Of a DNA stretch of 64,000 nt, positions 12,336 through 63,082 are shown in pieces. The notes under the pieces are model-generated. The model was not told the origin of the DNA, did no database searches, and saw nothing but the letters and a program-made list of their open reading frames with translations. Position 1 is the first letter of the stretch. Each line of letters begins with the position of its first letter. The stretch is from Selaginella moellendorffii (taxonomy: Eukaryota > Plantae > Lycopodiophyta), in contig NW_003314288.1 in the NCBI RefSeq assembly GCF_000143415.4, positions 820,642 to 884,641 on the forward strand, in the 5' to 3' direction. The position numbers and the translations under genes are program-made.

Positions 12336-13590
12336 AATCAATTGGCACTGCTCCTCTCAACACAAAGAAGGTCCAGGATGGAATAGCAAAAGAGATGTTG
12401 AAGATATGGAAGTCACACTCCTACCCAGGTTAAGTCAGAAAGAACCAGACCATCTGACAGAGGCATTACCTGATCGCTTGTCCTTCAACGTAGCGCATAA
12501 GAACAGTAATCAACAGTATAAAGGTGACTGTTCAGCTAGAGGTCTTTGGCCTAGGTGGCATAGAAATGTGGGAGCTTCGATCAAAGACTTATTGGATCTA
12601 CAAAGAGCTAGCAAGCCATCACTTACAGCAAAGTTCTTGTTGGGATCTTGTTTTTCTTCCTCAGCAGTGGACAAGGTAATACAATGAAAAAGGTAAAGTC
12701 AGGTATTTTTTTAACGTCCGCTTGGAGCAAACCCTGCTCATCGGATGGCCTCATGACAACCCATCACAACCCAGGATGAAAACTCCACATCAAAGCTTAA
12801 GGCAGCATTGCTTGTGATCGCCTTCATCTTGCTTTACAAACTGAAGTTATCGAGGTTCGTGATTGGATAATGCTTGATGGTGCTGAGACTCAAATCATCT
12901 TTGTTATGGAAACAACCCCATCACCTCAAGGTATTGTTTTCTATCCCCATAACAGTGGTGCACTGTTTCCATGTATAGTTCCCGAGGAGGTCCCAGTTCC
13001 CAGGATGGCCTTCGGTAAAAGGTTCAGGACGATACATCAGAGAGGGAAATACACTGAACTGGATCCTAAGGTTCAACTGGGAGAATGCTCTGCAATACAC
13101 TAGTTTGGGGAGTACCTATATCTGATCTTATATAGGATCCGGCTCAGTTATCCTGGGAAGGTAATGAGTTCAGTGTGTCTTTTTTATGTACAGGTCTAAG
13201 CATGGCAGAGAGCTTTTGATGGATAAAATTGACACCAAGTTTATGCGGAAGTTGAAGAATTGGAAGTACATTGTGAACATGTAGAAGACACTGGTGGAAG
13301 CTAAGGTAAGCTGGCTTCTTGTGCAGGACAGCATCCCTGTTGGTGATTGGCTCACAGTTCACAAAACTCTGTGTATTCTATGCAATGAAAACCCCGTGGA
13401 GATGCTTGAACACCTCTTCACATGCAAATTTGCAGTTGGTATTTGGCTCTTTGATCAGAGATTAGGTCCAGAATCAGCTGGTTCATCACGAAATACGGTG
13501 ACATTTTTCCCTCTGCTCCAACTGTGATGAACAGTAGCTGAGGAGAAAGAAGCTAGCAAAGCATCCCGCTAACAAAACTGCTAACTGTCT
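12336..13590 (+). mobile_element. Degenerate non-LTR (LINE-like) fragment
   Basis: zf-RVT-like CILCNENPVEMLEHLFTCKF..IW and an LGVPI-like motif; heavily deleted; inverted copy at ~38190-39407. Confidence 0.55.
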
Positions 13591-13599
13591 CACGTGACA

Positions 13600-16370
13600 C
13601 AACACCTCCAGCCATCAACAGGGTCAGAAAAGAAAGAAAGGATAGGAGCAAGCAACTACTTCCCCTCTTCCTTTGGAATGTCATCCAAGTCATACTCAAA
13701 ATTAGGAAACAACTTCCTCACATCATCCTCAGCTTCCCATGTAGCATCATATGGAGAATAACCATTCCACTGAACAAGTAACTCTTTCCAAGTCTTACGA
13801 TGTGTGCGCACTAGCCGTTGCTATAACACACAAGTAGGGCCAACCTTCAAACATCTATCTCTGGAATCTTGATCACAGACTGGTCCAAGATAGCAAACAC
13901 ACCTTCAAATTCCTACATAGAAGACGGGATGAATCTTGACACCACTAGGCAAGTCTAGTTCATAGGCAAGGTCTCCAACTCATTTGAGAATAATCCACGG
14001 CCCACAGTACTGTGGTGACAACTTAGAACTACCTCCACCTTGAAGAGCTCACTGAGCTTCAGACAACCGAAGGAAAACCTTGTCTCCAACCTGAAACTGC
14101 TTGTGCTGACGATGCTCATCAGCCAACTCCTTTGCCTGGTGCACCTTAAGAGAAGCCAAGTTCATACCAACAGGGGACCGAGGTTGAAAGCCATACATTG
14201 CCATAAACGGAGCCATGTCAATAGCCAAATGGAAGGCACAATTATAGGCAAACTCTAACAAAGGTAGGTACTTCTCCCAAATACCTTGCCTCTTCAGATG
14301 ACCAACAAACAATCTCAGCATGTCTTCCAGCACCTAATTAACTCGTTTTGTTTGTCCATCTGACTGTGGATGCTCATGCTCAGCTTTGTCTCAAGCTTCT
14401 GGAACACCATCTGCCAAAACTCCAAAGTGAACATGGGATCCCAATCACTTACAACATCCTTAGGCAGCCCATAGAGAAATACAGCTGAGCAAGGTCAAAA
14501 GCCTTAGCATTTGTCTTCACAAGGAAGAAGTGAGCCAACAACATTACACAATCCACAACAACCCAGATAGCATCATTGCCTTGAAGTGCCTACTATGAAA
14601 CTCATAGAAAATGTTATCCCACTTCCGCTGAGGTTAACTATAGTAGAGACCTTCATGCTTCTGACAATCCATTGTGACCACCTGGCCAGTCTAACAACTG
14701 TGCACATACTTATCAACACCTGACTTCATTCCAGGCCAAAATAAATGCGTCTCTACCAGAACACACATCCTCGATGTCCTGCACTTGGTGCAACGGACAC
14801 TCTTACAGAATCCACTGTAAAAGAACATCATCTCTAGGAACCATAGCCCGATTCCTCTTGACTAGGAAACCATCTTGTACATCAAAGGAAGCACAATCAC
14901 ATTGGACAAGGCATCCCCCTTCAAAACAACTGCACATGCCTTCACTACAAAGGAGTTGAAGTCAGCAAGCTCCTTAATTTCATCCAGCAAACCACTGGAG
15001 AGCTTCCCAAACGAGATAGAGTTCACCATCCTAGACAATGGAGAAACAACCACCTATACTGTCTACTCCTTTCAAAAACAGGAAAATTGTCTTAAAGAAA
15101 AGTTGGAGATCTTGGAAAACCTAGCAACTTTGCTTTAAACATAAATCTTCTGAATTCACGAGTAATCTGCAGTCAAAATTACCCTTTGACTTTTACTCGG
15201 GAATCCCCGGGGAAATCGGTTTTCATCACCTTCAACCCCAGAGCAAACTCCTCTGGATCTGCACATCCATTTCCTGCAAAAACTCCAGACGATGAGCTAG
15301 CCAGCCTCAAAGCTCCATCTGGCAAGTGACAAGTGGTAAAGTTATCCACATGAAAAATCCAAACCATACAGATAATGCCTCCACTCTTTGACCGCAACAA
15401 CTACAACATACAACTTCCTATCCCGAGTTGGCAGTTCAACTAAGTTGCATCAAACTTGTGCCTTATGTAGGCAATAGAACAGCAGTCTTGCACCAAGACA
15501 GCTCCTATACCCTCATCACTAGCCTTGTTAATGAAAGTATGTGTAGCAACAGAGTCAAAGAGGACACTGAGCACTTGGCTATGCACAACTCATTGCACAA
15601 ACAACCGTACAGCTCAAATGAGTTGATACAATTCTTCTTCACTCCTTCAGAAAGCTTAGTGACAGCAGTGTCAGCTAGAACATGAGTAGATACATTCTCT
15701 CCTTGGTCCACACTGACACCCATGGCCTCACTAGGATCAGAAAGAGAAAAGGACTCATGAGCCATACCCTCTGAACGCATAGACTCCATAAAGTGAGCCT
15801 TAGCCTTCTACCACAAGTGGCTTATCACAAGCAAATATCTATAGAATATACATAATTGCTTTAACAGCTCAAATGCTTCTTGACACTTTTACCCCACACA
15901 ACCTTAGCATGCTTGGTGGTGTTTCGAAGCATATCCATCAAAGGAGCAGCAATCAAGGAGAAGTCCTTCACAAACCGGCAAAAGACTCCCACCATACCAA
16001 GGAAACCCATGCACAGTAGGGGGAACAAGCTAGTCAACGACTATCTGAGTCTTTTGAGGATTTTCCCGCACACCATCTCGTGGCACCACATGTCCGAGAT
16101 AGGTGATCTCCTCCAAGAAGGACTCACGCTTTGAGAGTTTAGAATACAGCTTGTTCTCCCTCAATAGCGGCAACATTTGCCTCACATGCATCTCATGTTC
16201 CTCCTTAGTCATAGGACATCATCAAAGTAGTGCCTCGCACATGAGATTGCATAACTCTATCAAAAGAACTGCTTGATAATAGCTAGCCTCAGCCATCATA
16301 CGAAGCAACATCTTTGCTTAGTTAGAAAAGACTCCTTGAGCATTCCAAAGCTTCAAAACGAGATAGTCAA
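13600..16370 (-). mobile_element. Deletion-riddled chromodomain gypsy remnant (family B), copy 1
   Basis: RT (LRENKLYSKLSK..ITYLGHVV), RNase H, integrase (WEKYLPLLEFAYN), chromodomain-like LLVQWNGYSPYDATWE, PPT GGAAGAGGGGAAG. Confidence 0.8.
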
Positions 16371-17624: not shown

Positions 17625-19891
17625 GAGGTGAAAAGGCTACTGATTGCCGGAAAGCAGAAAGAGGCTTTACGGGCTGCTCAAGACGGGCAACTTTGGGGAT
17701 GTGCTCTTCTTATGGCCGAGAGAAGGTACCTTGTCTTGTAGCTTTGATGTATAGACCGTTAGTGATGGTCTTGTGGTTTTTAATAGTTCTACACCGACAC
17801 TATAGCGGAGATGGCTCAACGTCAGTTTCAACCAGGGTTTCAGCAGCAGTACAAAAGCTGTTTTGTCTCATGGTGCTACACGACGGGAACAAATATGTCC
17901 TTGGTTCTAGCTACGTAACAGCGTTTCAACCTCAACCGGTTCCAGCATCCGCTGTAGATGGTGCAACACAGGTAAAATACTGTTATCAAGCTACTCTCTT
18001 GCTTAAGGAGTGCATGTTGACTTGCAGGACGCAGTAGAAGGAATGCTCGAAGAATGGCAGGAAAACCTGGCTATAATGGCAGCTAAGCGAACTAATGGGG
18101 ACGAGAGAGTGATTATGCATCTTGGTGATTGTCTCTGGAGACATCAAGATGAGGTATATACATGGTCACACATTGATGTTTCTCATAATTTTAACTTGCA
18201 GATATGTGGAGCCCATATTTGCTATCTTGTTGCAAATGCTAGTTTTGAGCCTTTCTCCCCTTCTGCCAGACTTTGTCTTATAGGTGCCGACCATTGTAAG
18301 TATCCACGCACGTACGCTAGTCCAGAAACTATCCAGGTAAGCCGTGTTTGTCCTCAATAACAATTGTTAACCTTTTCTTCATCAGCGAATGGAAGTGTAC
18401 GAATTTGCAAGAGTGACTAGTTTATTTTACTTCCTTTTCAGCCATACAAGCTTATTTATGCGTTGATGCTTGCTGAAGCTGGAAAGATAAACGAAGCTTT
18501 AAGGTTGGTAGTGCTTTTTAACTGTATCCTTAAGGTTTCTCTTCGAAGGTATTGCCAAGCGGTGTTGAAAACATTGAAAACAGTGGGCCATGCAGCTGAT
18601 GTGTGCAAAGAAGCGGCTGTAGCCTTGGAAGAGCATCTTCATATCCACTCTCAGGTTTGTAATCGGACACTCGGCTTTTATACTCACTTTCCTGTTATCC
18701 AGGGAGGCTTGACATCAATTGTGCAACGGTTTTTTGGCAATATTGATGATAGGCCCTTCTTCCCCGAAAGCTTCTGATAATGCTGATATTAATAACCGTC
18801 CAGCTAAAGGAACGCCAAACAGAGGCGTCTTTACTTCTTTCGTGCAAAGAGCGATGGGCTTCATAATAACACCTTCGAAGGAGGTTTGTATAAGCTTTGG
18901 AAAGAGCAGTAGCTGATTGATGGTTGGTACGTGATGCAGGCAAAGCTTGGCGACAGCAACAAGTTTAGATACGACAAGACACTGAAGCGCTGGGTTGAAG
19001 AAAAAGCCAAGGCACAAGTGCCAGAGCTTCCGTTGGCTCCTCCGGCAAACAAGCTCGTCTTGCGCGTGGAGGAGAATGGCGCTCCTATTTCCATGTCTCC
19101 GGAGAGACCACAGCCAACTCCGGAAAGGCCGCAACCGGTTGTGAGTGGAATCCCACCAATGCCTCCGAGCAGTAACCAGTATGCAGCTCGCGCACGTCAA
19201 AACGTTAGATCAAGGTACCGTTTTGGTCATTCCCAGCACTCCAATCTCATGAGGTTTTTGCAGATATTTCGATACATTCAACAAAGGTATCGTAACACCA
19301 TCCAAGACATCATCGGACTCTCCTCCACTGTTTGGCGTGGTGCCAAAGGCAAGTGCAAAGCCTTTGGCTCCAGCGAGATTTTTCGTGCCTGCGCCCGCTG
19401 CTGCTGCTGCTGCTCCAGATATCAACAGCAACCATTCGGTGGATCCTTCCTCGGCACCGGCCTTTGTCCCCGACACGGCATTCTCAAACGGGAATGGACC
19501 GTTTGCAGCAGCAGCATTCGCTCAGCCGGTTGTACAGGATATGAGATGCGATCCGGGGCCAATGCCTGATCATCTCTTGAGCGGCTCTTCGCCAGCAATG
19601 TTCTATTCGAATCACTATCCAGAAGCACCGTCGACCGTCTCGTTGCCGCCACCTCCAGCTCTGGAAGTCACTCCGCCAGTGATGGTTGAGCAGCAGCAGC
19701 AAAACCAACACCAGGAAAGTTCGATTCATCGGCACCACCATCAACAGTCCGGTACAGTGGGATTCGAAGCTGCCAGTTCCTCCGGAGTGTTTGGAGACGA
19801 CTTGCAAGAGGAGAGGACAATTCATGCGACCTGCCGAGTTAAAACAGGCACGTAGAAAAAAATGTGATGTTCTTCCTTTGTGGAATTGTAA
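17625..19891 (+). pseudogene. SEC16: SEC16-like fragment, copy 2 (longest 5' extent)
   Basis: EVKRLLIAGKQKEALRAAQDGQLWG, EEWQENLAIMAA, HLGDCLW, AHICYLVA..ARLCLIGADH; internal deletions, frameshifts and a 69-bp insertion near the stop. Confidence 0.88.
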
Positions 19892-21229
19892 ATCACACCC
19901 CACAAATAAGTAGTTGGGTTAGTAGAGCAGTGTAGCGAAGTAGTAGTCGTGGAAGGAGGAATTTTTTTTGGCTGGGGTGATTCTTTGGAGCCACAAGCGA
20001 GAAAGCAAGATAACTAAAATGGATCAAACAATATAATTCAGGAATTAAATTCTATAAAGCAATAAAATTTAAAATGAAAACGGTAAAATCTAACATAGAA
20101 TTTAAATAGAATAAAATAGAGTAAAAAACTAGAACATATGCAACATATACTCTTCAATAATAAATTTCAAGCCATGATTCTCATTGTATAATCCATTAAA
20201 CATAATTTCGATAAATACTAAAAAAATTCTAGTTATGTCATTTTTTTAAAAAACTTTTTATGGTTGAACTATATGACAACATTAAATATCTGTACTACAT
20301 TATTTAATAATCCTGCCTAAATTCAAACAAAACTGATACAAGCTATTAGTATCATAACACTACCCTATTCTTTGTCTAAGGAAATTTTCCCCCTCTTAGT
20401 CTTATGGTTTTTTCTTAGGTTTTATTATTTGAGTTCTCTATAGATCACATCTTAGGAGGCATTTTTCCTTCCTCTCTAGCACATCCTAAGCACATATCTC
20501 TCCCACACTGTTTTGGTTTGTTTATGGCCATGGTAAGTTTTTCTTTCCTCAAAACATATGGTTTCCATTATTATAAAGAATATACACTTATTGCTTGGCG
20601 TGAGACTATATGATAGTGTAGTGTATTTACAAGAGAGTCATCCCATACTTGTCTATAGGCATGAGAGCGCATGCCTAAAAATCTCAAAACAAAAGAACAA
20701 AGATTTACAAGAGAGAGTCATCTAAAACTTGTCTATAGGTGTACAAGTGCACACCAAGAAATGTCAAGCTTCTTTGGAGAAACTCAAATTTGAGTTTTGC
20801 TAGGCATGAGCCCACACGCTAGCTTAAAAAAACAAGAGACTATGAGAGAGAGTGTGTTAGAAATCCTTACATTTTTGAAAAATGAGTTTGAGACCATGCT
20901 TGTTCAAAGTTAAGTAACCCCCATTTCTCTGGTCATTTTACAAAGTTGCACTTACCAATCTGTTTCTCTCTTAATTTAACTTTGGTTTATTGTGAGCTCA
21001 TATTCTTTCATCAATACATTAAATTGGGTTTAGCGTGCAAGTGCATGCTAGAAATTCTTTGACTTTGTATGTGCTTATTTTATGCATTTTTAATTATTTT
21101 TGCTACATATTTTCATGTTTTGTCTTCTCATATTCACAAAAGGAGCTTTGTTTTTTAATTTTCTTTTTTCTTGTCTTTTTTTTTGTTCTATTTGTGTTTT
21201 GATATTTGTAATTTTCTTTGTTTTCCTCA

Positions 21230-21822
21230 AGTTGTTAAAAGGAGATGTAATAGAGATTGTTTGGGATAATGGAGAATCAATTGCAAAGGGAATAATAGAA
21301 TCTTTAGATGCTACTTGCATTTGTCACTGTGCTTCTTTAAGCGTTAGATGTGTTTTGCTTTGCATTATTAAGGTGTTTAACTCGAATTACTCCCCCTTTA
21401 CAGGTGAGTTGGATGTTAGTGGGTTTTCTATATAGAAGCAGAATCAACTGATGTCTCTAATAGAGATATTTCCTACCAAAATCTCTTAGGGAAATACAAT
21501 TAGAACATAGAGGAATAATGATGAAGATGTTATTCCATAGAAGATAGAAAGTAAAAATATTTCCGGAGGCAAAAATATCCCTAATTTTGGTTATTCTTCT
21601 ATAGATATAAATGCTTGTAATATATGGTATAAAGCTCTTGTGAAGATAGTGGATGCTATACATGCAATTATGGCTGAGGGACTAGTTATTGTTGTAGACC
21701 CTCAAGATGCTCTACACTACATAACTTTAGGATGGGATTATATTGGAATCTCAAACTCTTCTTTTGTTGATGTTTCAAGTAAGTTGAAAATAGGTAGTCT
21801 AGTTCAATGGAAACTATCTTAA
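21230..21822 (+). mobile_element. Probable CACTA/En-Spm TnpA-type (Tnp1-like) remnant
   Basis: Two motifs, IAKGIIESLDATCICHCASL and MAEGLVIVVDPQDALHYITLG..VQW, resemble the Tnp1/En/Spm domain; contains stops; inverted copy at ~47520-48110. Confidence 0.45.
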
Positions 21823-23314
21823 ACTCTTTTTGGTAATAGTATACCATTTACCATATTAATAAGCACTTGCATTTCTTCTTCACATTATTGAAAATGAAAA
21901 TATACATTTATCAGATGAGCTATTAAGAACCAACCAAGCAAATAGAAATCAAATACCAAAGATTTAACAAGTCGAGGTCCCTTGGGGACGATGGGGAATA
22001 AAAATAACAGTTAATCAAAGCATGGATAGCGATCGAAGATAAAAAATACAAGAATCAAGGATCTAGAAACCTATATCAACAACAACCTTGAGAACAACAA
22101 CACTTAGAATATAACCACTACTCAGGTTAGACTTTTTGAACATCACTATCGACTGGAGAATGCGGACGCTCATAGTGAGGGTGTGCATGACTTTATACAA
22201 CACAATTAAAGGTAGGCCACAATTACTTTACAATAATTTAACACAACAAGGACTCATAAAAAGAGTAGCCATAGTATGCACTTTTGTTTGATTTTGAAGT
22301 TGGCGAGCAAAGACTTTGTTAAAGACTAATCAACTTTACCGAGCTGAGTACAACATAACAACACAAATACCAATACATAAGATTATGTTAGTTTATACCA
22401 CATGATTCTACAACTATACAACATTGCCTTGAGAAGAACACAACAAACCAAAGACAACAACAAAACCAAGAAAGCAAATTCAAAAAAATGATAACTCAAG
22501 AAAACTTTAGCATAATAGAAGACTCAAGCTTAAATCAAAATCCTAGAGACCATATTCAAGACTTTCGACAAAACGACCCAAGCCACACAAGATTTACTCA
22601 CTGAACAACGTAAGTATATTTGGTATGTACAAGGATTGAATAAGATATACTAGCAAATGGTTACTCTTGCAAGTACATAAGAAGATCTAGATGTCGAGAC
22701 CTCTATTGACAATATCTCCAAGAAAATCAAGAACCTCAAGAAACAACTCTAAAAATTTTTAAAAGTAGAAACAACAAGAATAAACGACTCTTCTAATGAT
22801 AAGGAAGAATACAAACTCGAAGTCATGAAGAAAGACAAGAATCAAGAACTTACCAAAATATTCAAGAAAGTTACAATCAAGAACAAACTTAAAAAAAGAG
22901 TATAGTGTACGAAATGTAAGAACAAAGGATACATCCTAACGGAGTGTAAATTACTGATTCTTAAGTGTTAGATCTGTTAAAAATAAAGATATATAGCAAA
23001 GATCTATCGATACAAAAGAGCAACTAAAGTCATATGAGTTAAGAATATACCTTGAACTCCTATACCAACTAGAAGACATTATAATCAACCCAGACAAGAA
23101 CCACAGTAGTGGTAACTGAACTATCAGAATCAAGGTACATATAATCCTAACCCTAGATACCATCAACAATACAATAATGGCAACCAAGACAATCAGTATC
23201 AGCGACCATACCAATAGGCTTATTATCAGCCTTATCGAGACAACCAACAATGGAGACCACCACCCCAGCAAAACAACTATCAACAATAGTACCACAACAA
23301 TCAACAATGGAGAC

Positions 23315-23700
23315 TGTCAGGAACCCCCAATCCTTGCCACATTCCTGACTCTTGTCGGATTCCTGACCTGCAGACCACATTCCTGATTCTCGAGACACTT
23401 CCCTATTCCTGACTCTCGAGACACTTCCCTATTCCTGACTCTCAAGACACTTCCCAATTCCTGAGTCTCGAGCCACATTCCTGATATTGATGTGGCGCCT
23501 CCTCGACCTCAGCTATATTTAGGCCGTCTTCAATCCAAGAGTGGTGGAGCTTCATCAACCTATAGTATATATAGGTTAGCCTTGTTCCATTTCTCCACAA
23601 TATGAATCAACACTAGTCTAAGGCCTCTTCTTTGTTTTCACTAGCTTTTTCTCTTTGTCTTTAGCATTTTCTAGTCTTGATCTTGTTGGGGGTCTTGACA
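23315..23700 (+). repeat. 5' LTR (386 bp) with 26-bp tandem units
   Basis: Near-identical to 28545-28957; TATATATA at 23566-23573. Confidence 0.95.
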
Positions 23701-23702
23701 GT

Positions 23703-23718
23703 TTGATTCAGATTGTGG
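23703..23718 (+). promoter_or_regulatory. Non-tRNA primer-binding site, complementary to the element's own LTR
   Basis: TTGATTCAGATTGTGG is the reverse complement of CCACAATCTGAATCAA (28852-28867 exact; 23595-23610 one mismatch); no TGG-type tRNA PBS. Confidence 0.8.
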
Positions 23719-23797
23719 TTTTTGCTTTTCTTTTAGCTCGCTTTGATTATTTGATTGCCTTTATCTTTTTCCCCCTTTCTTTTCTTTCTTCTTGCCA

Positions 23798-24787
23798 ATG
23801 GAGTCTCCAAGCCATCCTGATTTCTTTGCCGAAGTCCTTGCAAAAATCCAGTNNNNNNNNNNNNNNNNNNNNNNNNNNNNNNNNNNNNNNNNNNNNNNNN
23901 NNNNNNNNNNNNNNNNNNNNNNNNNNNNNNNNNNNNNNNNNNNNNNNNNNNNTTCCTGAACTGAAGGTGAGTTTCCCGGCGAAATTTTCAGGCAAGCGTT
24001 CGGAGCTTCGTGGATTTTTGAACCAAATGGAGCTGATCTTTGCACTTCAACATCGGCGGTACCCCACTCCCGAGTCTCAAATCGGCGCGATTGGGACGTT
24101 GCTCGAGGGTGTAGCTTTGTCATGGTTTTCTCCTCTTCTAGAGAAGAGCATGAAAGGGGTCGTGGTTCCGGAGCTGATGGATCTTCAATTGTTCAAAGAG
24201 AAGCTCGAAGCATGTTTTGGCGAGACGGATCGGGTTCGGGCTGCTACCACAAAGATGAGACATCTCTCTCAGGGGTCTTGTCCTGCCTCGATCTATGCTG
24301 CAGAGTTCCAACTCCTTGCCTTGGACACTCAGTGGGATGAGCGGGCCCTGATTGACCAATTTCGTTTCGGCCTCAACAACGGTGTCAAGGATTTGTTGCT
24401 CACCATGGAGGATCCCAAGGACCTGTCGGACGCCATCAACAAAGCTATTCAATGTGACAATCATCTCTTTGAACGTCGTCAGGAAAGTTGCCGCGCCGCT
24501 GTTTTTCCGTCCCAGACTTAGGAATCCCAGCTTGAGTCTTCGGGGCATAGTCCTAAACCTACTGCTCCGGTCCCGATGGATATTTCTGGTACTCCCCGAC
24601 TCATTAGAGGAAGTTGAGTCCTGCTGAGAAGCAATGTCGAATATCTCATAATCTTTGCCTCCACTATGCTGATCCTAATCACAAAGCAGTTGTGTGTCCC
24701 AAGAAGCCTCCCCAATTGCTCGAGTTCACTCTGCCTCAAAGTCCACCTCTGTTGCAGTCGGGAAATGACCCTGTCCAAACAGAGTAA
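23798..24787 (+). pseudogene. gag: Chromovirus gag (spans the gap; stop at 24519, frameshift ~24611)
   Basis: PAKFSGKRSELRGFL..GVALSWF..QFRFGLNNGVKD; PVPMDI; degenerate zinc knuckle LCLHYADPNHKAVVCP. Confidence 0.88.
23853..23952. other. Assembly gap (100 N)
   Basis: Run of N. Confidence 1.
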
Positions 24788-24804
24788 GAGCTGTCTGTTT
24801 GGAC
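24760..24804 (+). promoter_or_regulatory. -1 programmed ribosomal frameshift signal (gag to pol)
   Basis: G GGA AAT in the gag frame, 6-nt spacer, perfect 11-bp stem GTCCAAACAGA/TCTGTTTGGAC; the -1 frame is the pol frame. Confidence 0.75.
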
Positions 24805-28533: not shown

Positions 28534-28544
28534 GGAGGGGGTGC

Positions 28545-28957
28545 TGTCAGGAATCCCCCAATCCTTGCCACATTCCTGACTCTCGTCGGATTCCTGACCT
28601 GCAGACCACATTCTTGATTCTCGAGACACTTCCCTATTCCTGACTCTCAAGACACTTCCCTATTCCTGACTCTCAAGACACTTCCCTATTCCTGACTCTC
28701 AAGACACTTCCCAATTCCTGAGTCTCGAGCCACATTCCTGATATTGATGTGGCGCCTCCTCGACCTCAGCTATATTTAGGCCGTCTTCGATCCAAGAGTG
28801 GTGGAGCTTCATCAACCTATAGTATATATAGGTTAGCCTTGTTCCATTTCTCCACAATCTGAATCAACACCAGTCTAAGGCCTCTTCTTTGTTTTCACTA
28901 GCTTTTTCTCTTTGTCTTTAGCATTTTCTAGTCTTGATCTTGTTGGGGGTCTTGACA
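28545..28957 (+). repeat. 3' LTR (413 bp)
   Basis: One more 26-bp unit than the 5' LTR. Confidence 0.95.
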
Positions 28958-35934: not shown

Positions 35935-38189
35935 GTGATAAGCCACTTGTGGTAGAAGGCTAAGGCTCATGCTATGGAGTCTATGTGTTCAGAGGGTATG
36001 GCTCATGAGTCCTTTTCTCTTTCTGATCCTAGTGAGGCCATGGGTGTCAGTGTGGACCAAGGAGAGAATGTATCTACTCATGTTCTAGCTGAAACTGCTG
36101 TCACTAAGCTTTCTAAAGGAGTGAAGAAGAATTGTATCAACTCATCTGAGCTGTACGGTTGTTTGTGCAATGAGTTGTGCATAGCCAAGTGCTCAGTGTC
36201 CTCTTCGACTCTGGTGCTACACATACTTTCATTAACAAGGCTAGTGATGAGGGTATAGGAGCTGTCTTGGCGCAAGACTGCTGTCCTATTGCCTACATAA
36301 GCCACGAGTTTGACACAATTGAACTGCCAACTCGGGATAGGAAGTTGTATGTTGTAGTTGTTGCGGTCAAAGAGTGGAGGCATTATCTGTATGGTTTGGA
36401 TTTTTCATGTGGATAACTTTACCACTTGTCACTCTTTTCACTCGCCAGATGGAGCTTTGAGGCCGGCTAGCTCATTGACTAGAGTTTTTGCAGGAAATGG
36501 ATGTGCAGATTCCAAACCACCAGAGGAGTTTAGCTCTGGGGTTTAAGGTGACGAAAACCGATTTCCCCAGGGATTCCCGAGTAAAAGTCAAAGGGTAATT
36601 TTGACTGCAGATTACTTGTGAATTCGGAAGATTGATGTTTAAAGCAAAGTTGCTAGGTTTTCCAAGATCTACAACTTTTCTTTAAGACAATTTTCCTCTT
36701 TTTGAAAGGAGTAGACAATAAAGGTGGTTGTTTCTCCATTGTCTAGGATGGTGAACTCTATCTCATTTGGGAAGCTCTCCAGTAGTTTGCTGGATGAAAT
36801 TAAGGAGCTTGCTGACTTTGACTCTTTGTAGTGAAGGCACGTGCAATTGTTTTGAAGGGGGACGCCTCTTCCAATGAAATTGTGCTTTCTTCGATGTACA
36901 AGATGGTTTCCTAGTCAAGAGGAATCGGGCTATGGTTCCTAGAGATGATGTTCTTTTACAGTGGATTCTATAAGAATGTCTGTTGCACCAAGTGCAGGAC
37001 ATCTGAGGACGTGTGTTCTGGTAGAGATGCATTTATTTTGGCCTGGAATGAAGTCAGGTGTTGATAAGTATGTGCACAGTTGTTAGACCGGCCAGGTGGT
37101 CACAATGGATTGTCAGAAGCATGAAGGTCTCTACCATAGTTAACCTCAGCGGAAGTGGGATAGCATTTTCTATGAGTTTCATAGTAGGCACTTCAAGGCA
37201 ATGATGCTATCTGGGTTGTTGTGGATTGTGTGATGATCTTGGCTCACTTCTTCCTTGTGAAGATAAATGCTAAGGCTTTGGACCTTGCTCAGCTGTATTT
37301 CTCTATGGGCTGCCTAAGGATGTTGTAAGTGATCAGGATCCCACATTCACTTTGGAGTTTTGGCAGAGGGTGTTCCAGAAGCTTGAGACAAAGCTGAGCA
37401 TGAGCATCCACAGTCAGATGGACAAAAAAAAAGAGTTAATTAGGTGCTGGAAGACATGCTGAGATCGTTTGTTGGTCATCTGAAGAGGCAAGGTATTTGG
37501 GAGAAGTACTTGCCTTTGTTAGAGTTTGCCCATAACTGTGCCTTCCATTTGGCTATTGAGATGGCTCCGTTTATGGAAATGTATGGCTTTCAACCTCGGT
37601 CCCCTGTTGGTATGAACTTGGCTTCTCTTAAGGTGCACCAGGCAAAGGAGTTGGCTGATGAGCATCGTCAGCACAAGCAGTTTCAGGTTGGAGACAAGGT
37701 TTTCCTTTGGTTGTCTGAAACGCAGTGAGCTCTTCAAGGTGGAGGTAGTTCTAAGTTGTTGCCATAGTACTGTGGGCCTTGGATTATTCTCAAACAAGTT
37801 GGAGACCTTGCCTATCAACTAGACTTGCCTAGTGGTGTGAAGATTCATCCCATCTTCTATGTAGGAAGTTGAAGTGTTTGCATTCTGGTAATATCTTGGA
37901 CCAGTCTGCGATCAAGATTCCAGAGATAGATGTTTGAAGGTTGGCCCTACTTGTGTGTTATAGCAACGGCTAGCGCACACACATAGTAAGACTTGGAGAG
38001 AGTTACTTGTTCAGTGGAATGGTTATTCTCCATATGATGCTACATGGGATGTTGAGGATGATGTTGTTTCCTAATTTTGAGAATGACTTGGATGACATTC
38101 CAGAGGAAGAGGAGAAGTAGTTGCTTGCTCCTATCCTTTCTTTTCTGACCCCATTGATGGCTGGAGGTGTTGTGTCACGTGAGACAGTT

Positions 38190-39835
38190 AGTGGTTTTGT
38201 TAGTGGGATGCTTTGCTAGCTTCTCTCTCCTCAGCTACTGTTCATCATAGTTGGAGCAGAGGGAAAAATGTCACCGTATTTCGTGATGAACCAGCTGATT
38301 CTGGACCTAGGTCTCTGATCAAAAAGGCAAATACCAAATGCAAATTTGCATGTGAAGAGGTGTTCAAGCATCTCCATGGGGTTTTCATTGCATAGAATAC
38401 ACAGAGTTTTGTGAACTGTGAGCCAATCACCAACAGGGATGCTGTCCTGCACAAGAAGCCAGCTTACCTTAGCTTCCACCAGTGTCTTCCACATGTTCAC
38501 AATGGACTTCCGATTCTTCAACTTTTGCATAAGCCTGGTGTCAATTTTATCCATCAAAAGCTCTCTGCCATGCTTAGACCTGTACATAAAAAAAGACACA
38601 CTGAACTCATTACCTTCCCAGGATAACTGAGCCAGATCCTATATAAGAACAGATATAGGTACTCCCAAAACTAGTGTATTGCAGAGCATTCTCCCAGTTG
38701 AACCTTAGGATCCAGTTCAGTGTATTTCCCTCTCTGATGTATCGTCCTGATCCTTTTACCGAAGGCCATCCTGGGAACTGGGACCTCCTTGGGAACTATA
38801 CATGGAAACAGTGCACCACTGTTATGGGGATAAAAAAAAATACCTTGAGGTGATGGGGTTGTTTCCATAACAAAGATGATTTGAGTCTCAGCACCATCAA
38901 GCATTATCCAATCACGAACCTCGATAACTTCAGTTTGTAAAGCAAGATGAAGGTGATCACAAGCGATGCTGCCTTAAGCTTTGATGTGGAGTTTTCATCC
39001 TGGGTTGTAATGGGTTGTCATGAGGCCATGTTTGCTCCAAGCGAACGTTAAACAAATACCTGACTTTACCTTTTTCATTGTATCATACCTTGTCCACTGC
39101 TGAGGAAGAAAAACAAGATCCCAACAAGAACTTTGCTGTAAGTGATTGCTTGCTAATCCAATAAGTCTTTGATCGAAGCCTATGCCACCTAGGCCAAAGA
39201 CCTCTAGCTGAACAGTCACCTATATACTGTTGATTACTGTTCTTATCCGCTACGTTGAAGAACAAGCGATCAGCTAATGCCTCTGTCAGATGGTCTGGTT
39301 CTTTCTGACTTAACCTGGGTAGGAGTGTGACTTCCATATCTTCAACATCTCTTTTGCTATTCCATCCTGGACCTTCTTTGTGTTCAGAGGAGCAGTGCCA
39401 ATCGATTCCTTGTTTCTAGTTACCACCCTGTCTAGGCAAGATCTTCTGTAGCTGAGCTCTGAAGAGGAGGTGCCAGCTCTGGTTTTGTGGATATAAACCT
39501 GACACAAGCACTTTGAAGAGAAGAGCTTCGGATTGAATTTCTGGTGTGGCACATTCCGAATAACTGAATTCCACTCTACTTTTGCCCGGACTTTGCACCT
39601 GCTGGAGTTTCTAAAGTTTCTACATATGTCGTTGGTGATCAAGTGTTGGTGAGTTATCGGGTGTTGTGGATCCAAGGCTTTTGCTGCATAGGTCCTTATC
39701 ACATCGTCCAACAAGTTTGTCCACAAATCTATGTGGTGACACTCAATGCACAACGTCAAGAGAAGATCCATGTGAAGCAGTTAGCTCGATATTGTTTGTG
39801 AACAGATTGATGTAAGGATTCTACCATATATTCTA
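38190..39835 (-). mobile_element. Degenerate LINE-like fragment, unbroken version
   Basis: Contains as one contiguous stretch the sequence found split between 12336-13590 and 63081-63510. Confidence 0.6.
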
Positions 39836-39840
39836 TATAT

Positions 39841-39950
39841 TGACCATTTTGAGGTAGCTCGGGGGTGGTTGGGTGGTGACAAATCTCAAGAGGTGGCATA
39901 GCATAGTCTATGGTGACTAGATCTCTATCCTTTTGCACCGGATCATAATA
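39841..39950 (+). repeat. Partial LTR of the 6189-6421 family
   Basis: Reverse complement matches ...GATCTAGT...CCCAACCACCCC.GAGCTACCTCAAAA; the LTR end lies at 39950. Confidence 0.7.
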
Positions 39951-49600: not shown

Positions 49601-51590
49601 ACTTTCCTGGTGCTGGTTTTGCTGCTGCTGCTCGACCATCACTGGCGGAGTGACTTCCAGAGCTGGAGGTGACAGCAATGAGACGGTCAACGGTGCTGCT
49701 GGATAGTGATTCGAATAGAACATTGCTGGCGAAGAGCCGCTCGAGAGATGATCAGGCGTTGGCCCCAGATCGTTTCTCATATCCTGTACAACCGGCTGAG
49801 CGAATGCTGCTGCTGCAAACGGTCCATTCCCATTTGAGAATGCCGTGTTGGGGACAAAGGCCGGTGCTGAGGAAGGATCCACCGAATGGTTGTTGTTGAT
49901 ATCTGGAGCAGCGGCAGCAGCGGCCGCAGGCACAAAAAATCTCACTGGAGCCAAAGGCTTTGCGCTTACCTTTGGCACCATGCCAACCAGTGGAGGACAG
50001 TCCAATGATGTCTTGGATGGTGTTATGCTACCTTTGTTGAATGTATCGACATATCTGCAAAAACCTCGTGAGACTGGAGTGCTGGGAATGACCAAAACGG
50101 CACCTTGATCTAACGTTTTGACGTGCGTGAGCTGTGTACTGGTTACTGCTCGGAGGCATGGGTGGGATTCCACTCACAACCGGTTGCGGCCTTTCCGGAG
50201 TTGGCTGTGGTCTCTCCGGAGACATGGAAATAGGAGCGCCGTTCTCCTCCATGTGTGAGACGAGCTTGTTTGCCGTGGGAGGAGGAGCCAACGGAAGCTC
50301 TAGCGCTTGTGCCTCGGCTCCTTCTTCAACCCTATCTAAACTTGTTGCTGTCGCCAAGCTTTCCCTGCATCACGTACCAACCATCAATCAGCTAGCGCTC
50401 TTTCCAAAGCTTCTACAAACCTCCTTCAACGTGTTTTTATGAAGCCCATCGCTCTTTGCACGAAAGAAGTAAAGACGCCTCTGTTTGGTGTCCTTTTGCT
50501 GGACTAAAAATCTGATGAAAGAATACAAGTCGTAATTGAAGGTACACAAGAGCAAGTGTGCAGGCCTAAAGTCAGGCTCAGAAATGCTTCTTGCTGGCAT
50601 GTTGGATCTTCTCATATTATCACTTATGGGTTCCATTGATGCCGACAAGGCAAGTGATACACTGCTTCTGCTAGAAGCTGTTGCGGGACGGTTATTAATA
50701 TCAGCATTATCAGAAGCTTTCGGGGGCGAAGGGCCTATCATCTTGTGTAGACCAATATTGCCAAAAACCATTGCACAATTGACGTCGAGCCTCCCTGGAT
50801 AACAGGAAAGTGAGTATAAAAGCCGAGTGTCCGCTTACAAACCTGAGAGTGGATACGAAGACGCTCTTCCAAGGCTACAGCCGCTTCTTTGCACACATCA
50901 GCTGCATGGCTTGCTGTTTTCAATGTTTTCAACACCGCTAGGCAATACCTTCGAAGAGAAACCTTGTGTTAACGAAGGATACAGTTAAAAATCACAACCA
51001 ACCTTAAAGCTTTGTTTATCTTTCCAGCTTCAGTAAGCATTGACGCATAAATAAGCTTGTATGGCTGAAAAGGAAGTAAAATAAATTGGGAATTGCCAGT
51101 CACTCTTGCAAATTCGTACACTTCTGTTCGCTGATGAAGAAAAGGTTAACAATTGTTAGGACAAAACACGGCTTACCTGGATAGCTTCTGGACTAGCATA
51201 CATGCGTGGATACTTTCAATGGTCGGCACCTATAAGACAAAGTCTGGCAGAAGGGGAGAAAGGCTCAAAACTAGCATTTGCAACAAGATAGCAAATATGC
51301 ACTCCAAATATCTGCAAGTTAAAACTATGAGAAACATCAACGTATGACCATGTATATCCTTCATCGCGATGTCTCCAGAGAGAATCACCAAGATGCATAA
51401 TCACTCTCTTGTCTCTATTAGTTCGGTTAGCTGCCATTATAGCCAGGTTTTCCTGCCATTCTTCAAGCATTCCTTCTACTACGTCTTGCAAGTCAACATG
51501 CACTCCTTAAGCAAGAGAGTAGCTTGATAAAAGTATTTCACCTGTGTTGCACCATTACAGTAGATGTTGGAACCGGTTGAGGTTGAAGCG
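46635..51590 (-). repeat. Inverted copy of ~17920-22595 (SEC16, spacer, CACTA-like remnant, gypsy C 5' part)
   Basis: Colinear reverse-complement similarity with matching ORF translations. Confidence 0.9.
49499..51590 (-). pseudogene. SEC16: SEC16-like fragment, copy 3
   Basis: Same exons as copies 1 and 2; stop after IGADH; deletion in the FRYDETLKRW motif. Confidence 0.88.
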
Positions 51591-56217: not shown

Positions 56218-56935
56218 AAGAAAAACCACAAGAATATATATATATATTTCATGGATACACTTTTCAGGTATGAGAAACATAGCTTTGGGTTGGAAGTCCC
56301 TTGCCTGATCAATAATAGTCTCTTTGCATCACTCCTAACAGATTGGGCCTAGAGAACAACCAAAAAAAATTCAAAAGCTAGCCCTCTACACTTTGAGCTC
56401 CTAGAAAGTACCCTTGCATAGAGGTGGCAGCTGGTTAAACTTGAGAAGTTAGCTTGTCTGGAGGACCTCCTGTTGCTCTTGCTTCCTTGCCACAAAATCA
56501 CACCTACAAACACATGTCCAAACATTGAACTACAATATAGTTCTCAAAACAACATCTTTTTGCCAAAAGCATCAGTTAACTATATAGTCAACTCTTTGTA
56601 GTCAACGTGATGACCATTATTAAAATGTTTTGAATTTATACATACAAGATTAGTCTAAATAAATATGAACAATTAGATTATAGAATATTCAAGAATACCC
56701 AGGTATATCCTATACTGGTTTGCTTAGAGATGCTATGTGACTATCACTGTCATTTTCTGTGCGGTGACAGTGATAAAATGCTGTATATGTAACCATCATC
56801 CACATCAAATTATTCTAGAATATTCTAAAATCAAGTTACCATTGAGTCAGTGCTAATTTGTCATTGAAGTGGTCCAGTCTAAACCCTAAACCACTAAGAG
56901 CCCTAATTTCTTTGCTTGAGGGCCAAGCATCCGGG

Positions 56936-58226
56936 ATGAATAGGGCAACGGTTGTGGTTTCTGTGGTTGTTGTGGCTGCTGCTGCAATTGATCAGTTGGT
57001 TGTTGCTTATAGAAGACCTAGAAGGTGTCTTAGAGAAAATCTTGAGGATGAGAGGCTTAAAGTTACTCTTTACCAACAATTAATGCTAGTGTATCATCAC
57101 ATGTGCTTGGCAGTAGTTGGGAGTTGATTGCAATTGAACTTCTTTTAAGAGGGGGATTTCTATATCAGACTAAGATCTCTTCATTGGTTTTGTTATTGGG
57201 TGGATGAAGTTGGAATGCAAGATCTAACAAGGTAGAGAGAGTTCTTCAAAGTTTCTAAGGAGCAGTTCATGACAATCTACGAACTTGTTGCTCTGTCAAT
57301 GCAAATAACACTGCCTCCAAATTTTAAAAACATTCCATATAGATATGTTCTTGTTGGTAAGCAAGTTGCCATTGCTTTATGGAGATTAGTTTTAGGTGAT
57401 TCTTTTGCTAGGTTGATAGAGCATTTTGATGTTTCTAAAGCAATTGTCCAGAAGTATTGTTAGAAGTTCTCCAACTCAACATTCTAGCATCTAGGACAAC
57501 TTCTTGTGTGGCCAGTAGATCTGTCAATAGTAAAAATAAGTTTCAAGAGTTTTTTGGCTTCTTGAATTGCTATGGTGCAATTGACTACACGTATTTCAAA
57601 ATTGAACTTCCTGGAAACACTTTTGCAAGTGATTATTACAACAAGGACAAGGATAAATCAATTGTCATGCAAGCAATCATTGATAGTGAAGCAAGGTTCT
57701 TGGATATTTGAGTTGGAGATCTTGGGAGTTGCAATGACATAACTATTTTGAGGAAGAGTTCATTCTACAAAAGAGCTCAATCAGGTGAAATTCTTAACAA
57801 ACTAATAGTCTCAAGAGGCCAATACTAGTTTTGGGAATATATCATCGGAGACTCAGGATACTACGAGCTTCCGTGATTAGACCATTTCCAAGTGTAAATG
57901 GAACTAAATTGAGGGAAGCATTCAACTTTTATTTTTCATCTTTGAGGATGGTATGTGAGAGAAGTTTTGGATTATTTACAAGTCATTGGAAGATGTTTAG
58001 AAAGTTGGTTAAAGTTGAGACCATCACTCAACTAATAGTTGCCATAAAAACAACTTGCATTCTGCATAACTTCATTATTAGTATAGGTGACATAGGGGAA
58101 ATAGATATTGAGCCTGCGCCAGTGACTAATCAACCACAAGACTGGTGATTGGAGCCTCATGTCGTTGCTACAGAGGTTAGAAACATTCTCATTACTTATG
58201 TAGTAGACTTAAGCAAATCCACTTGA
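56936..58226 (+). pseudogene. Harbinger DDE transposase (HARBI1/ALP1-like)
   Basis: KQVAIALWRL, NCYGAIDYTY, SIVMQAIIDSEARFLDI, GSCND, IIGDSGY, CERSFG, CILHNF; stops and frameshifts. Confidence 0.88.
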
Positions 58227-58669
58227 AGCTCACAAATTTATTTATTTTAGCGTGCTCACAAACTCAAGTTTTGTTTTATTTTTCAGGGTTTTAATTCGGA
58301 GATTTCAATACAAGGCTTGAAGGCGGGTGCAGCAGGGAACCTGGCTGAGAGCAGAGAGAGGGGGGCTATGATGAGTTTAGAGTCACAGTTGCTGCCAGTA
58401 TTGGTCTGATTCTAACATTCAGGTTTGTTTCTGTTCTTCTCATAAGGAAGGTTTTAAAATGATTAAAGGGGGTTTTGCGTGTTGAGTCGTCTGGCGGCAA
58501 GAGGAAGAGGGAAGAAAATGATTTGGAATGGCACTGCAGAAGATGCTTGGAAATGCAGCTTGAGGCTGTTGACGCAAGGGAATGCAACTTGAGGCCATTG
58601 AAGCTATTCTATCACTAGAAGTTGGGACACTACTTGGTTTCCCAATGAATTCTTCAAAATTCCCAATGA

Positions 58670-58921
58670 ATTCGGTGGTAGGGCGGGTGGTAGAAGGCCT
58701 CGATGTTGTCCAAAAGATTGCAAGTACCAGGGTGGTCAAAGATAACACAAGCAATCTTTACTTCCAATACGTATTTTCTTCTCTTTGTTCCTTGGGAAAA
58801 ATCTTATCTTGAATCCCCACAGCATTGCCAAGCTTATAGGCAATACCTGAGCAGTGGTCGCTGAGAGGGGATTCAATCAACCATACACAAAGATTGTCAT
58901 TTCGCAGTGTGGCATTCTTGG
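58670..58921 (+). pseudogene. CYP26-2: Captured fragment of a chloroplast cyclophilin CYP26-2-like gene (2 exons plus intron)
   Basis: VVGRVVEGLDVVQKIASTRVVKDNTSNLYF / intron 58767-58822 / IAKLIGNT*AVVAERGFNQPYTKIVISQCGIL; recognised from memory of the plant CYP26-2 C-terminus. Confidence 0.8.
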
Positions 58922-59149
58922 TACTTACTCTTGCAAAGTTCTTTCTTTCCTTTCAATCTAACTCTGATCCATTCATGTTTCTATTGCCAAAAAACTGATA
59001 CAAACAGCTTTACATGAATGCTCATGTCCTTCCAACAAGAATGCTCTATCTAAATTGATGGAATTGATCCAAGGATATTGGTAGTGGCAATGCAAGATGG
59101 GAATGCTGGGCCTAGAATTGTTGATCAGGTAAATCATCACATCTTCATC

Positions 59150-60199
59150 AGTTCATCATCTTTCTCATTGCTTTGGAGATAGTAATCAGTGACATTGTAA
59201 ACTACAAAAGTGAAGTTCATGAATAAGAATGTGAATTGACTTACCAAAGAATCAGCAATTATAAACAAGGCTTGAGTTACTTGATTCACACTCTTCATCA
59301 TCTAACTATCCACAACTAGAGTATGCTCTATAAATTCTTCCTTCTAGCTATTTTCCATTGTATCAATGAGGCTCACATTGTTGTCACACAGCGCTCCTGC
59401 AAGTTGTTTTGCAAGTTGTGTATGGGACTTCTTCCTCAGCTAGCCTGAACTATGCTTTTCAGGATTATTGTTGTTTTCTTTCATTGCCAAAAGTGATTAT
59501 GAAGAAAAACTACAAAAAATACCTTTAGGCTCTAATTCTCCACATGGAGGTAATAGTGATTGCTGTTGTGAAGCTCTTGGTGTCAGTAATGGTGATTGTT
59601 GGGATGTAAGTAGTGAAGACATTAATTCCTAAGTCTGTCTTTGTGAATTTATAGTTTGACAGTCCTAAAGCCACTCGTCCATCATTGCATAGAGTTGATC
59701 ATTGAACTTTGGTGGTAAATCAGCTTCACAATGTTGCTCTGTTGTCATGTTTCAATATTGCTTTTGCCAGTAGGAACATGATATTCATATGACTTGATTT
59801 TGTTGAACTCTTTGTAGATATACTCCCAACAAGATTGGCATTGCCCAGGCAAACAGTTGACACCATATGTCAAACAGTAGCTGGAAACTTAGTGAATGGC
59901 TGGAAGTCTAAAAAATCCAAAACTTACTCGGAAACTTGCTGCCAATGAACACTTGTAGTCTTGTGCCTCTTCTGAATGCTACCTCACTACTGTAAGAAGA
60001 AATTATGCTTCTTTGCTTCATTTAGAGCCAACAATTCATTTAAAGACCAATGCCCCCAATTTTTAGTTGGCTTCAGAGGCTTCAGTGGAGTGGGAGCAGT
60101 AAAATTCCCCCTACTGAATTGAGAACCATCATACAGAAACTTTTAATGACATTGAGTGAAGAACACAATCTCTAAATCATTTAGCTGTTGCTTTCCCAT
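59150..60199 (-). pseudogene. Harbinger Myb/SANT (trihelix-like) DNA-binding ORF
   Basis: HWSLNELLALNEAK..HWQQVSE / intron / YCLTYGVNCLPGQCQSCWEYIYKEFNKIKSYE..LPPKFNDQLYAMMD. Confidence 0.72.
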
Positions 60200-62188
60200 T
60201 CTGCTCAAGACCCTAAAACCATGAATTGACATGTCAGCAATAGTGGCGGGAGGAAATAACTACCACATCAGCATTTTAACCTGCTATTGCAGGTTTCATG
60301 GTGGACAACTAACTGGGCCAGTTTTGAAAAACATTCAAATTGATTTCACTGTCACAATGCCATTGTTAAAAAATGACAGTGATGGTGACATGTACTAAAG
60401 CAACGTTACTTCAAATTGCTGATGTGGCCATCACAATTTGACTGTGATAGTCACATGTGGAATGTCTATTAAGAAAACCAAAAATATAGTGCCTATATTG
60501 AAGAAATACTCAAAACTGAAGCTATAGAAGATAGGTATTGTGGAAAAATAAAGAATATAAAAATATGATATGTGTGCAAATAGGTCATACACCTTGTGAA
60601 ATAATCATTTGCATGTCTGGAAACCGTAAGCTAATGTGACCATCATCGTCTATTTATGCAATCAGCTGTTTGGTGTTCTTTTGCAAATCGCCTGCAGAAA
60701 AAAATCTATCAAAATAAATATTTGAATTGTAAAGAATACTTGGGGAATGCATAAAAAATATGATCTTATTTAACACTTTTTCTCCATCTAGCATGTCATA
60801 GAGGACAAAGTAGCAATCTATTTAAATTATGACTCAATGTAGATTGAAATCACTACAGGATGATCCTAAGGATTCAAAACAACTAATTATCCTTGTCTCA
60901 AAAGGCTAGTGCAATATTCTAAATCTGAATACCAATCCATAATTTGGAATGATGCTAGACTGAAAGATTAAAGGGAACTGAAGAGTTGAGTCTAGTATTC
61001 CTAAGAGTTTAAGAATGATTAAGATTGTACTCCAACATGATAGCTTTGAAAATTTTCATATACTTATATTCCATGATATTGGAAGAGAAGGGAATAGTTG
61101 GTCATAAAACATTTTACAAAGTGCTAGTTGCCATTGAAGAAGCAATATTCCCTTATACTTGCTTTATAATTATTTGTCACAACAACATTATATGTAAAAC
61201 TCCACCCTGCAGAATAGAAAGAAAGTTTTTGAAGGGAATGGATGCGTAGGAAATGGCACTTGTAATCTTTCTTATTTCCAAATGGGAGCTAGAACATAGA
61301 TTTGGATGCCTTGAGAGGCGCACTCTGCTTGCGCCATGTCAAACTTCTCATCATCAAATTACTTAACTTGCATCCCTATATATCCCTATACTAATTCCTA
61401 AAGCTCTCCAAGGATTTGGTTCTTGACAGGTATGGCATTGACTTTGCGGAAGATTTGATTTCCTTGTAAAATCGCCTTGCATACATGCTTTGCAAAGAGC
61501 AATCCATTCAACATAGATTAAGCCCATCATAAAAGTGGGCCAATTGTCTTTAAATTTAATTCTCTGTATCAACATCCAATGGAGCCTTCGTAAATATCAA
61601 GAATGGGCTGAGGCCCAGCGGAGAGGATAACATATGGAACTCAGAGAGGAGAACATATGAAGCATGTCGGGAGGCAATGAGGGAGATAGGATACAAGGAA
61701 GGCAATGGGAACGAGGTATCAATGAGCCCATCTCCACCCGCGCCTCAAACGCAAGCTTTTCACACCACTACTTCCCACTTTCAACAGGAGCTCATGATAG
61801 ACTCTCACCGGCATGGTCTTGAGAATCTGGATTGCCACGCCTAGCATGGCACTGATGTGGAGCAGGAGGAGCGCAGTGCTGCTGCTGAAATTCACAACAG
61901 CAGCATTGGATCTTGCGTTGCTGGCTATAGCAAACCCACTGCACTTAACACTCCAGATAGATTTCTGAAGACTCTCCTATGCCCAATCTCTGTGCGTCCC
62001 GCTCTCCATCCATGGGGGATGGGGCGGCTCACGGAATGGCTGGATATCAACGATCGATGTTTGGGTCAACACATCAAAACAGTGAAGAATCAAGTCTGAA
62101 CTGCTCTGAAGATGTTCTCCAGCATCACATAAGGCAATGCATCACTCACAAGGCTGGACTGGCACGTAAATTCCGCAGCATGCATCCC

Positions 62189-63082
62189 TCAATTCATCTC
62201 CCCGTGGTTTTTGCACGCAGTAACAAACGTTGCCCATGCAACTCCATCTGCTGGCAAAGGCATATTCTCCAGGACATCCTCGGCCTCTTTCAATCGCCCT
62301 AGTCGTCCGAGAGCATCAACAATGCAGGTGTAGTGGTCTTGCGAAGGATCCAATCCATTGTCAAAGCTCATTGCCGTGAAGTAGCTTACTGCTTCCTTGA
62401 CGAGCCCCAGATGGCTACACGCCGTCAAAACGATGGCAAACGCTGCCTTGTCGGGGTCAAAGCCGAAAAGTGCTGGAACGCAGAATACGCATGCCCGGTC
62501 TGGGCATATGCTGCAAGAATCGTGTTCCAGGAGACCAAGTTCCAAGTTCGCATCTCATCGAACGATTTCTTAGCATCACGAATATTTGCATCTAGAGCAT
62601 ATACCACTAGAATTGTGTTCCATGAATAGGAATCCCAGCAGCAAACCAAAGAAAACGCCCGGATCGCCTCTTTGAAACGACCTCTCTGGGCATAAACAGC
62701 GATTGTCGCGTTCCATGAAACAAGATCTCTGTGTGGCATTTCTTCAAACAATTGTTTTCCTTGATCAACATCACCTTTTTGGGCGTATGACTTGATCATA
62801 ATCTCCACAAAAGTACGCTGTGCTGAGGCATCCTATCAAACAAACTCTTGGCTTGAATCAAATCCCCATTTTGGGCATAGCAGCAGTGCATCGCCCCCCA
62901 GAGGATCGCGTTTCGGTGGACAATCTCCTGGAAGACATCCTCCGCCTCCTCCACGAATCCATTCTCCGCAAACATGACGAGCATCACCGCGCGAGTGATC
63001 GGGCATGGAATCAAACGCGGCCTTCGCATCGCCCACTCGCCCGCGCTGCGCGAAACCCTGCACGAGGATCGTCCACGCTACC
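62189..63082 (-). pseudogene. PPR gene 3' half with E domain, broken at ~63082
   Basis: AFAIVLTACSHLGLVKEA..DHYTCIVDALGRLGRLKEAEDVLENMP..AWATFVTACKNHG; paralog of 4540-5423. Confidence 0.9.

Follow-up and report, generated by a model that had tools for sequence, protein, structure and literature searches.

A segment of about 50.7 kb (12336..63082) within the 64-kb stretch of Selaginella moellendorffii DNA analyzed here (the window) has likely been inverted by two double-strand breaks followed by end joining. The segment spans 50,747 positions, a length that is approximate as it includes a 100-N placeholder. Four strings had been quoted for the two junctions and their continuous paralogues, and an exact lookup in the window recovered all of them at their positions. 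At junction A (12325-12348, plus strand), GAGACGAATGT is followed directly by AATCAATTGGCAC, with the break at 12335/12336; here, the 5' part of a PPR copy is blunt-joined to the 3'-ward part of a LINE relic, without the GG. Junction B (minus strand, ending at 63071) reads ACTAGAAACAA-GG-TAGCGTGGAC, and the 5'-ward part of the LINE relic meets the 3' part of the PPR copy through a single shared GG (CC at 63081-63082 on the plus strand); because this GG is common to both partners, the junction can be placed only within 63080/81 to 63082/83. The continuous PPR paralogue (PPR-A) reads GAGACGAATGT-GG-TAGCGTGGAC at 5414-5436 and the continuous LINE-like paralogue reads ACTAGAAACAA-GG-AATCGATTGGCAC at 39395-39420, both on the minus strand, and the chimeric strings of junctions A and B occur once each in the 64-kb window. 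Self-BLAST of the window revealed that these short strings are the tips of long alignments. On the LINE side, 12336-15828 aligns over 3.5 kb with 39407-35935 in inverted orientation (94%), and 63081-63509 aligns with 39408-39836 in direct orientation (95%); on the PPR side, 63082-61966 corresponds to 5425-4316 (89%), with homology extending to 56073/2177, and 12335-12048 pairs in inverted orientation with 5426-5784 (about 90%). Each breakpoint falls within a repeat, and the LINE homology extends for 3.5 kb to one side of its breakpoint and for 430 bp to the other. Judged from these alignments, the junction pattern cannot have arisen by chance.

The window was rebuilt with 12336-63082 reverse-complemented and was then aligned to the continuous paralogues. 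In this re-inversion, as in the self-comparison, both of which had been proposed as checks, the two pairs aligned straight through the breakpoints. The restored PPR copy (PPR-B) showed exact continuity with PPR-A through CGAATGT-GG-TAGCGTGG, and in the restored LINE copy 2, compared with copy 1, the only sequence missing at the breakpoint was GG. Homology at the breakpoints amounts to 0 bp at junction A and 2 bp (GG) at junction B, and in the re-inversion alignments the two junctions showed neither duplicated or triplicated sequence nor templated insertions. Both parental sequences return on re-inversion, which bears out the original prediction that a single inversion produced both junctions reciprocally; the alignments likewise support its view that the joining was non-homologous, that the ends overlapped by 2 bp (GG) at one junction, and that the net loss was 2 bp, and its polarity, with the chimeric arrangement as the derived state, also held.

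We favor two breaks and end joining because the partners have only GG in common and the junctions carry neither a transposon end nor a duplication. The first break would have fallen in a PPR pseudogene copy at AATGT/GG/TAGCG and the second in a degenerate LINE relic at AACAA/GG/AATCG, and the four ends would have been rejoined crosswise by non-homologous end joining. In the simplest scheme, cuts between T and GG in the PPR copy and between GG and A in the LINE would make junction A blunt (…AATGT/AATC…), and at junction B the two GG ends would anneal and collapse to one (…AACAA-GG-TAGCG…), for a net loss of 2 bp. The GG at junction B would also suit an inversion through replication-based template switching (FoSTeS/MMBIR) on 2-bp microhomology, but we consider this improbable: the event is balanced, with only 2 bp lost and nothing duplicated or inserted; junction A has no microhomology; and the copy-number change that is usual for template switching is absent. 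Inversions also arise when inverted repeats undergo non-allelic homologous recombination (NAHR), or when hAT or CACTA ends take part in alternative transposition. Such inversions resemble the present one in segment size and repeat-rich setting, and the window contains many inverted repeat pairs as well as a hAT element whose 708-aa transposase ORF (33570-35696) is intact. However, over 20 kb separates this element from either junction, both breakpoints lie away from transposon ends, no transposon terminus, target site duplication (TSD), or terminal inverted repeat (TIR) was found at either breakpoint or junction, and the joined partners, PPR and LINE, are non-homologous sequences that share only GG rather than inverted homologous repeats. 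An origin by transposon or homology is hence scarcely credible, and the anatomy of the junctions, as read from the sequence, excludes both NAHR and alternative transposition.

The repeat that received the second break is a LINE relic joined to an antisense Ty3/gypsy pol relic; the two form one repeated unit, of which the window holds three copies. Copy 1 (35935..39836, minus strand) is continuous and serves as the reference for this breakpoint. In copy 2, the 3'-ward part of the LINE relic occupies 12336..13600 on the plus strand and is followed to 17182 by the gypsy relic (minus strand), with integrase- and RT-like ORFs, and the 5'-ward part occupies 63083..63509 on the minus strand, the repeat unit ending at 63509. 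Copy 2 also retains a zf-RVT relic (13294-13527) about 0.95 kb 3' of the break, and its location on the plus, sense strand agrees with the LINE orientation given in the original prediction. With the zf-RVT cutoff at 27.5 bits, copy 1 passes narrowly (27.8 bits) and copy 2 falls just short (27.4 bits); these matches weakly but genuinely speak for the LINE label. The ORF that carries the LINE breakpoint in copy 1 (39310-39771) matched no Pfam family.

The PPR side consists of PPR-A (2177..5784, minus strand), which is the continuous reference, and PPR-B, whose 5' part lies at 12048..12335 (plus strand; Pfam PPR matches in ORF 12009-12326) and whose 3' part lies at 61966..63082 (minus strand), with flanking homology to PPR-A that reaches 56073, broken only by a 3.7-kb insertion (56727-60468). 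In the un-inverted order, some 6 kb separated PPR-A from PPR-B, the two lying head to head; the inversion shifted the 3' part of PPR-B by 50 kb, into direct orientation with PPR-A. PPR-A had been described as intact. It is continuous but not intact, being itself a pseudogene: its ORFs do not exceed 135 aa, and three or more frame changes are required; restored PPR-B likewise requires at least three. Relative to PPR-A, PPR-B has lost 71 bp in its 5' part, which shifts the frame, as well as 11 bp at 62998/62999 and 16 bp at about 62465, and alignment to PPR-B revealed that the lesions specific to PPR-A include two 1-bp deletions, one of 14 bp, and one of 7 bp. The homology between the two copies begins in the middle of a PPR motif, …(T/M)LVVY(V/A)RCGHL…, upstream of which their sequences are unrelated, and both copies have an in-frame TGA in an E1-like motif (GEMN*GMHAAEF…PYVMLENIF). 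In neither restored PPR-B nor PPR-A does one ORF span the PPR array together with the C-terminal E/DYW part, and the disrupted target, judging from its reading frames, is not a functional PLS-class PPR gene. The break falls about 360 bp into a PPR-like stretch of ~1.35 kb. The statement that the inversion cut a PPR gene in half is therefore too strong, since the copies are frameshifted, have a common stop, and start mid-motif, and the break is off-centre. The mid-motif starts, the common TGA, and the several frame changes per copy make it most likely that PPR-A and PPR-B descend from an already truncated pseudogene and that the copy cut by the inversion was dead. A frameshift common to both copies at '...LLW/EIMIKSY' was considered as proof of death before duplication and was dropped, as PPR-A has an overlapping 9-bp indel there; the frameshift is uninformative because common and independent lesions need an equal number of events. 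Exact-product lookups of the chimeric ORFs across the junctions (12307-12687, plus strand; 62836-63099, minus strand) matched no record, and a word-index protein search with the PPR-B pieces 12009-12326 and 62425-62808 gave no match in the length range searched, a result that does not extend to longer proteins.

The inverted segment is almost entirely transposon-derived: it contains a chromovirus, the hAT element, gypsy and LINE relics, unclassified repeats, a tandem array with a 12-bp unit, and the 3.7-kb element at 56727-60468. One unclassified repeat family occurs at 10123-11911, 17925-22591, and 46635-51587, and its ORFs matched no Pfam family. No candidate working gene was found in the inverted segment, a search in which spliced genes may be missed. 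The sole N run of the window is an assembly gap at 23853..23952, inside the segment, and this gap, together with a repeat-rich region in which copies are 88-95% identical, would favor an assembly artefact, either chimeric contigs or a misoriented scaffold piece. Against this, the gap lies inside one Ty3/gypsy chromovirus (23315-28957, plus strand) that encodes protease, RT, RNase H, integrase, and chromo domains. Its LTRs (5', 23315-23700; 3', 28545-28957) are in direct orientation and about 98% identical, and it is flanked by a 5-bp TSD, GAGAC, at 23310-23314 to the left of the gap and at 28958-28962 to the right. Since the LTR pair and the matching TSD flank the gap, the two contigs carry one insertion in the correct order and orientation, and both junctions sit on one continuous chromosome segment. 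The gap is 11.5 kb and 39 kb from the junctions, which are well inside contigs; therefore, the gap does not create them. Exact reciprocal products at non-homologous sequence are, moreover, not something that assemblers make.

The region of junction B was also compared with contigs from four public runs (X1, X2, X6, and X8; all Logan contigs). Record 20 of X6 (sample S3) is a 58-nt contig that matches 63053-63110 with no mismatch and crosses junction B; its flanks of 30 and 28 nt fall below the 31-letter bridging rule, its depth is 2, and the run is not recorded as DNA or RNA. The length of this contig is about the maximum for a contig between the two observed branch points with 31-letter words. 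Junction B thus probably exists outside the assembler, in an independent read set, and with this exact contig added to the points above we regard an assembly artefact as highly improbable.

The same runs also contain the un-inverted arrangement. The join GAATGT-GG-TAGCG, in which 63082 runs into ACATTCGTCTCGGGCATCC..., is present in record 21 of X6, record 30 of X8, and a contig of X2. Record 21 of X6 has 63053-63082 in common with record 20 and continues for 213 nt, starting ACATTCGTCTCGGGCATCCGATCCAGCACT…, as the reverse complement of the PPR 5' part. Compared with PPR-B, record 19 of X6 has 0 mismatches in 497 nt and record 30 of X8, a run with a different sample and organism label, has 1 mismatch in 258 nt; the un-inverted contigs do not come from PPR-A, because PPR-A is only about 89% identical. 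A near-identical un-inverted form therefore exists in public reads (X2, X6, and X8). A loose end before 63081 in X6 carries the continuous LINE join, with GG and a C specific to copy 2. In the un-inverted sequences recovered from reads, at the loose ends of 63081 and 63082, each parental site has its GG, which confirms the predicted 2-bp bookkeeping independently of the paralogues. Record 30 of X8 holds the un-inverted join on one contig with an 11-bp insertion (TGCTGTTCTTC after 62998); the window is without those 11 bp, which are present in contigs of both X6 and X8 and restore the local PPR frame, and no contig with the 11-bp deletion of the window was found in the four runs compared, which therefore represent the window's haplotype incompletely. 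Record 31 of X8 spans 63454-63970 (LINE end and flank), and that sample thus has the insertion site in common with the window; X8 contains the un-inverted join and no inverted junction. A PPR-B-specific un-inverted 33-mer had 0 exact matches in metagenome contigs, as expected for a collection that is not plant DNA.

The un-inverted form is probably the other allele, and the inversion would then be heterozygous or polymorphic. It could instead represent a paralogue of more than 99% identity from a recent large duplication, one copy of which was later inverted, with the inversion now fixed. Further close relatives of the PPR unit do exist in the genome, because numerous variant contigs of this region occur in X1 and X2, where their depths add up to thousands, and among them is a third PPR form that has the 16 bp at 62465; the repetition of PPR-A/B-type units in the genome fits a paralogue as well. 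On the other side stand the near absence of mismatches in the un-inverted contigs, the similar depths in X6 (2.0 for inverted-specific, 2.7 for un-inverted-specific, and 3.3 for common sequence), and the combination in X8 of the un-inverted join and the LINE insertion site (63454-63970) with no inverted junction. We consider such a paralogue unlikely and retain the allelic reading. Nearest to junction A, the inverted allele differs by C>T at 12324, on the strand whose 3' end lies at the break, and by G>A at 12340, the mirror change across the junction. It is improbable that the inversion is a young variant, still segregating or heterozygous and with both alleles retrievable from public data, in which these two changes record the deamination of cytosines in single-stranded DNA exposed by resection during repair; if it were, they would constitute a natural break-associated mutation signature in a lycophyte. 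We did not adopt a repair signature from these two CpG transitions, as ordinary CpG decay suffices.

The inversion belongs to a known kind of structural variant and involves no new mechanism. Staggered-break inversions of Drosophila are also two-break and non-homologous, and they leave inverted duplications at both breakpoints; the present junctions differ in having no duplication and a net loss of 2 bp instead. A closer counterpart is HsInv0379, a polymorphic human inversion of 415 kb formed by non-homologous end joining, with breakpoints in unrelated L1 blocks, which disrupts a gene (PMC4591017). Both inversions are balanced, with breakpoints in transposon or gene sequence without recombining homology (PMC4591017); in both, elements that break off abruptly in the derived arrangement point to the ancestral one, a member of a gene family contains one of the breakpoints, and the variant is polymorphic, here probably. 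The two differ in size (50.7 kb here), in the 2-bp microhomology at one junction here versus none in HsInv0379, and in the disrupted unit, which is a pseudogene fragment here and an expressed gene there.

Taken together, this is a base-resolved natural end-joining inversion in transposon-rich lycophyte DNA, for which public data may hold both arrangements. It can be used as a structural marker, as a check on assembly or haplotype phasing, and as a data point on double-strand break repair in this lineage. No obvious functional effect is expected, because the segment is transposon sequence and the cut PPR copy was most likely already dead; no working gene appears changed, and the biological consequence is probably nil. 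The sole effect to be expected beyond that would be local suppression of recombination in heterozygotes.

At the junction between positions 12335 and 12336 (junction A), one end of the inversion, we compared the window with the contigs from the public read runs X6 and X8 that continue through the PPR breakpoint uninverted. The window carries T and A at positions 12324 and 12340, whereas these contigs and both paralogues carry C and G. The two differences, which lie 12 bp and 5 bp from the junction, are CpG transitions, and each falls on the strand expected to be single-stranded after end resection. Ordinary CpG decay also accounts for them. The 3′ part of PPR-B, the PPR copy split by the inversion, lacks 11 bp at 62998/62999 that the X6 and X8 contigs contain, and the same 11 bp are also present in soft-clipped contigs of the runs X1 and X2. 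Putting them back restores the local PPR frame, and the deletion form of the window was not seen among the contigs of X1, X2, X6, and X8.

The identity between PPR-B and PPR-A, the continuous pseudogene copy, is mosaic (4330–4620 versus 62110–62400); it reaches 97–99% around the E1-like motif and just downstream, and is 86–90% across most of the PPR array, a pattern for which gene conversion between PPR-A and PPR-B is one possible cause. Over positions 61000–64000, which look low-copy, the contig depths of X1 and X2 sum to thousands, with hundreds of short variant contigs at 90–100% identity. This points either to many relatives of the PPR unit in that sample or to a library made from something other than plain whole-genome DNA.

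A repeat family is present in three copies (10123–11911, 17925–22591, and 46635–51587) that are 89–92% identical, one of which stops 137 bp upstream of the PPR-B fragment; its open reading frames (up to 224 aa) matched no Pfam family. The inverted segment contains a tandem array at 44365–45205, consisting of approximately 72 copies of the 12-bp unit GAGATGGAGTCC with 76–81% matches. A young chromovirus occupies 23315–28957, flanked by the target site duplication GAGAC. Its LTRs are approximately 98% identical, with one LTR having an additional copy of an internal 26-bp tandem unit, and the assembly gap falls after the 5′ LTR/PBS region of the element and before gag.

Copies 1 and 3 of the gypsy/LINE composite form a tail-to-tail near-palindrome (30430–43636) with arms 88–96% identical. 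Copy 1 (30430–39836, plus strand) alone carries a hAT element (33399–35934), bordered by duplicated GTGATAAG(C), and the remaining two copies in the window have an empty site at this position. The transposase open reading frame of the element (33570–35696, 708 aa) is apparently intact and encodes DUF659 and hAT dimerisation domains. The opposite arm is copy 3, which is truncated and inverted (43636–39951). Copy 1 ends at 39836 and copy 3 is cut off at 39951, leaving a spacer of only approximately 115 bp, and this site may represent a second, older rearrangement junction.
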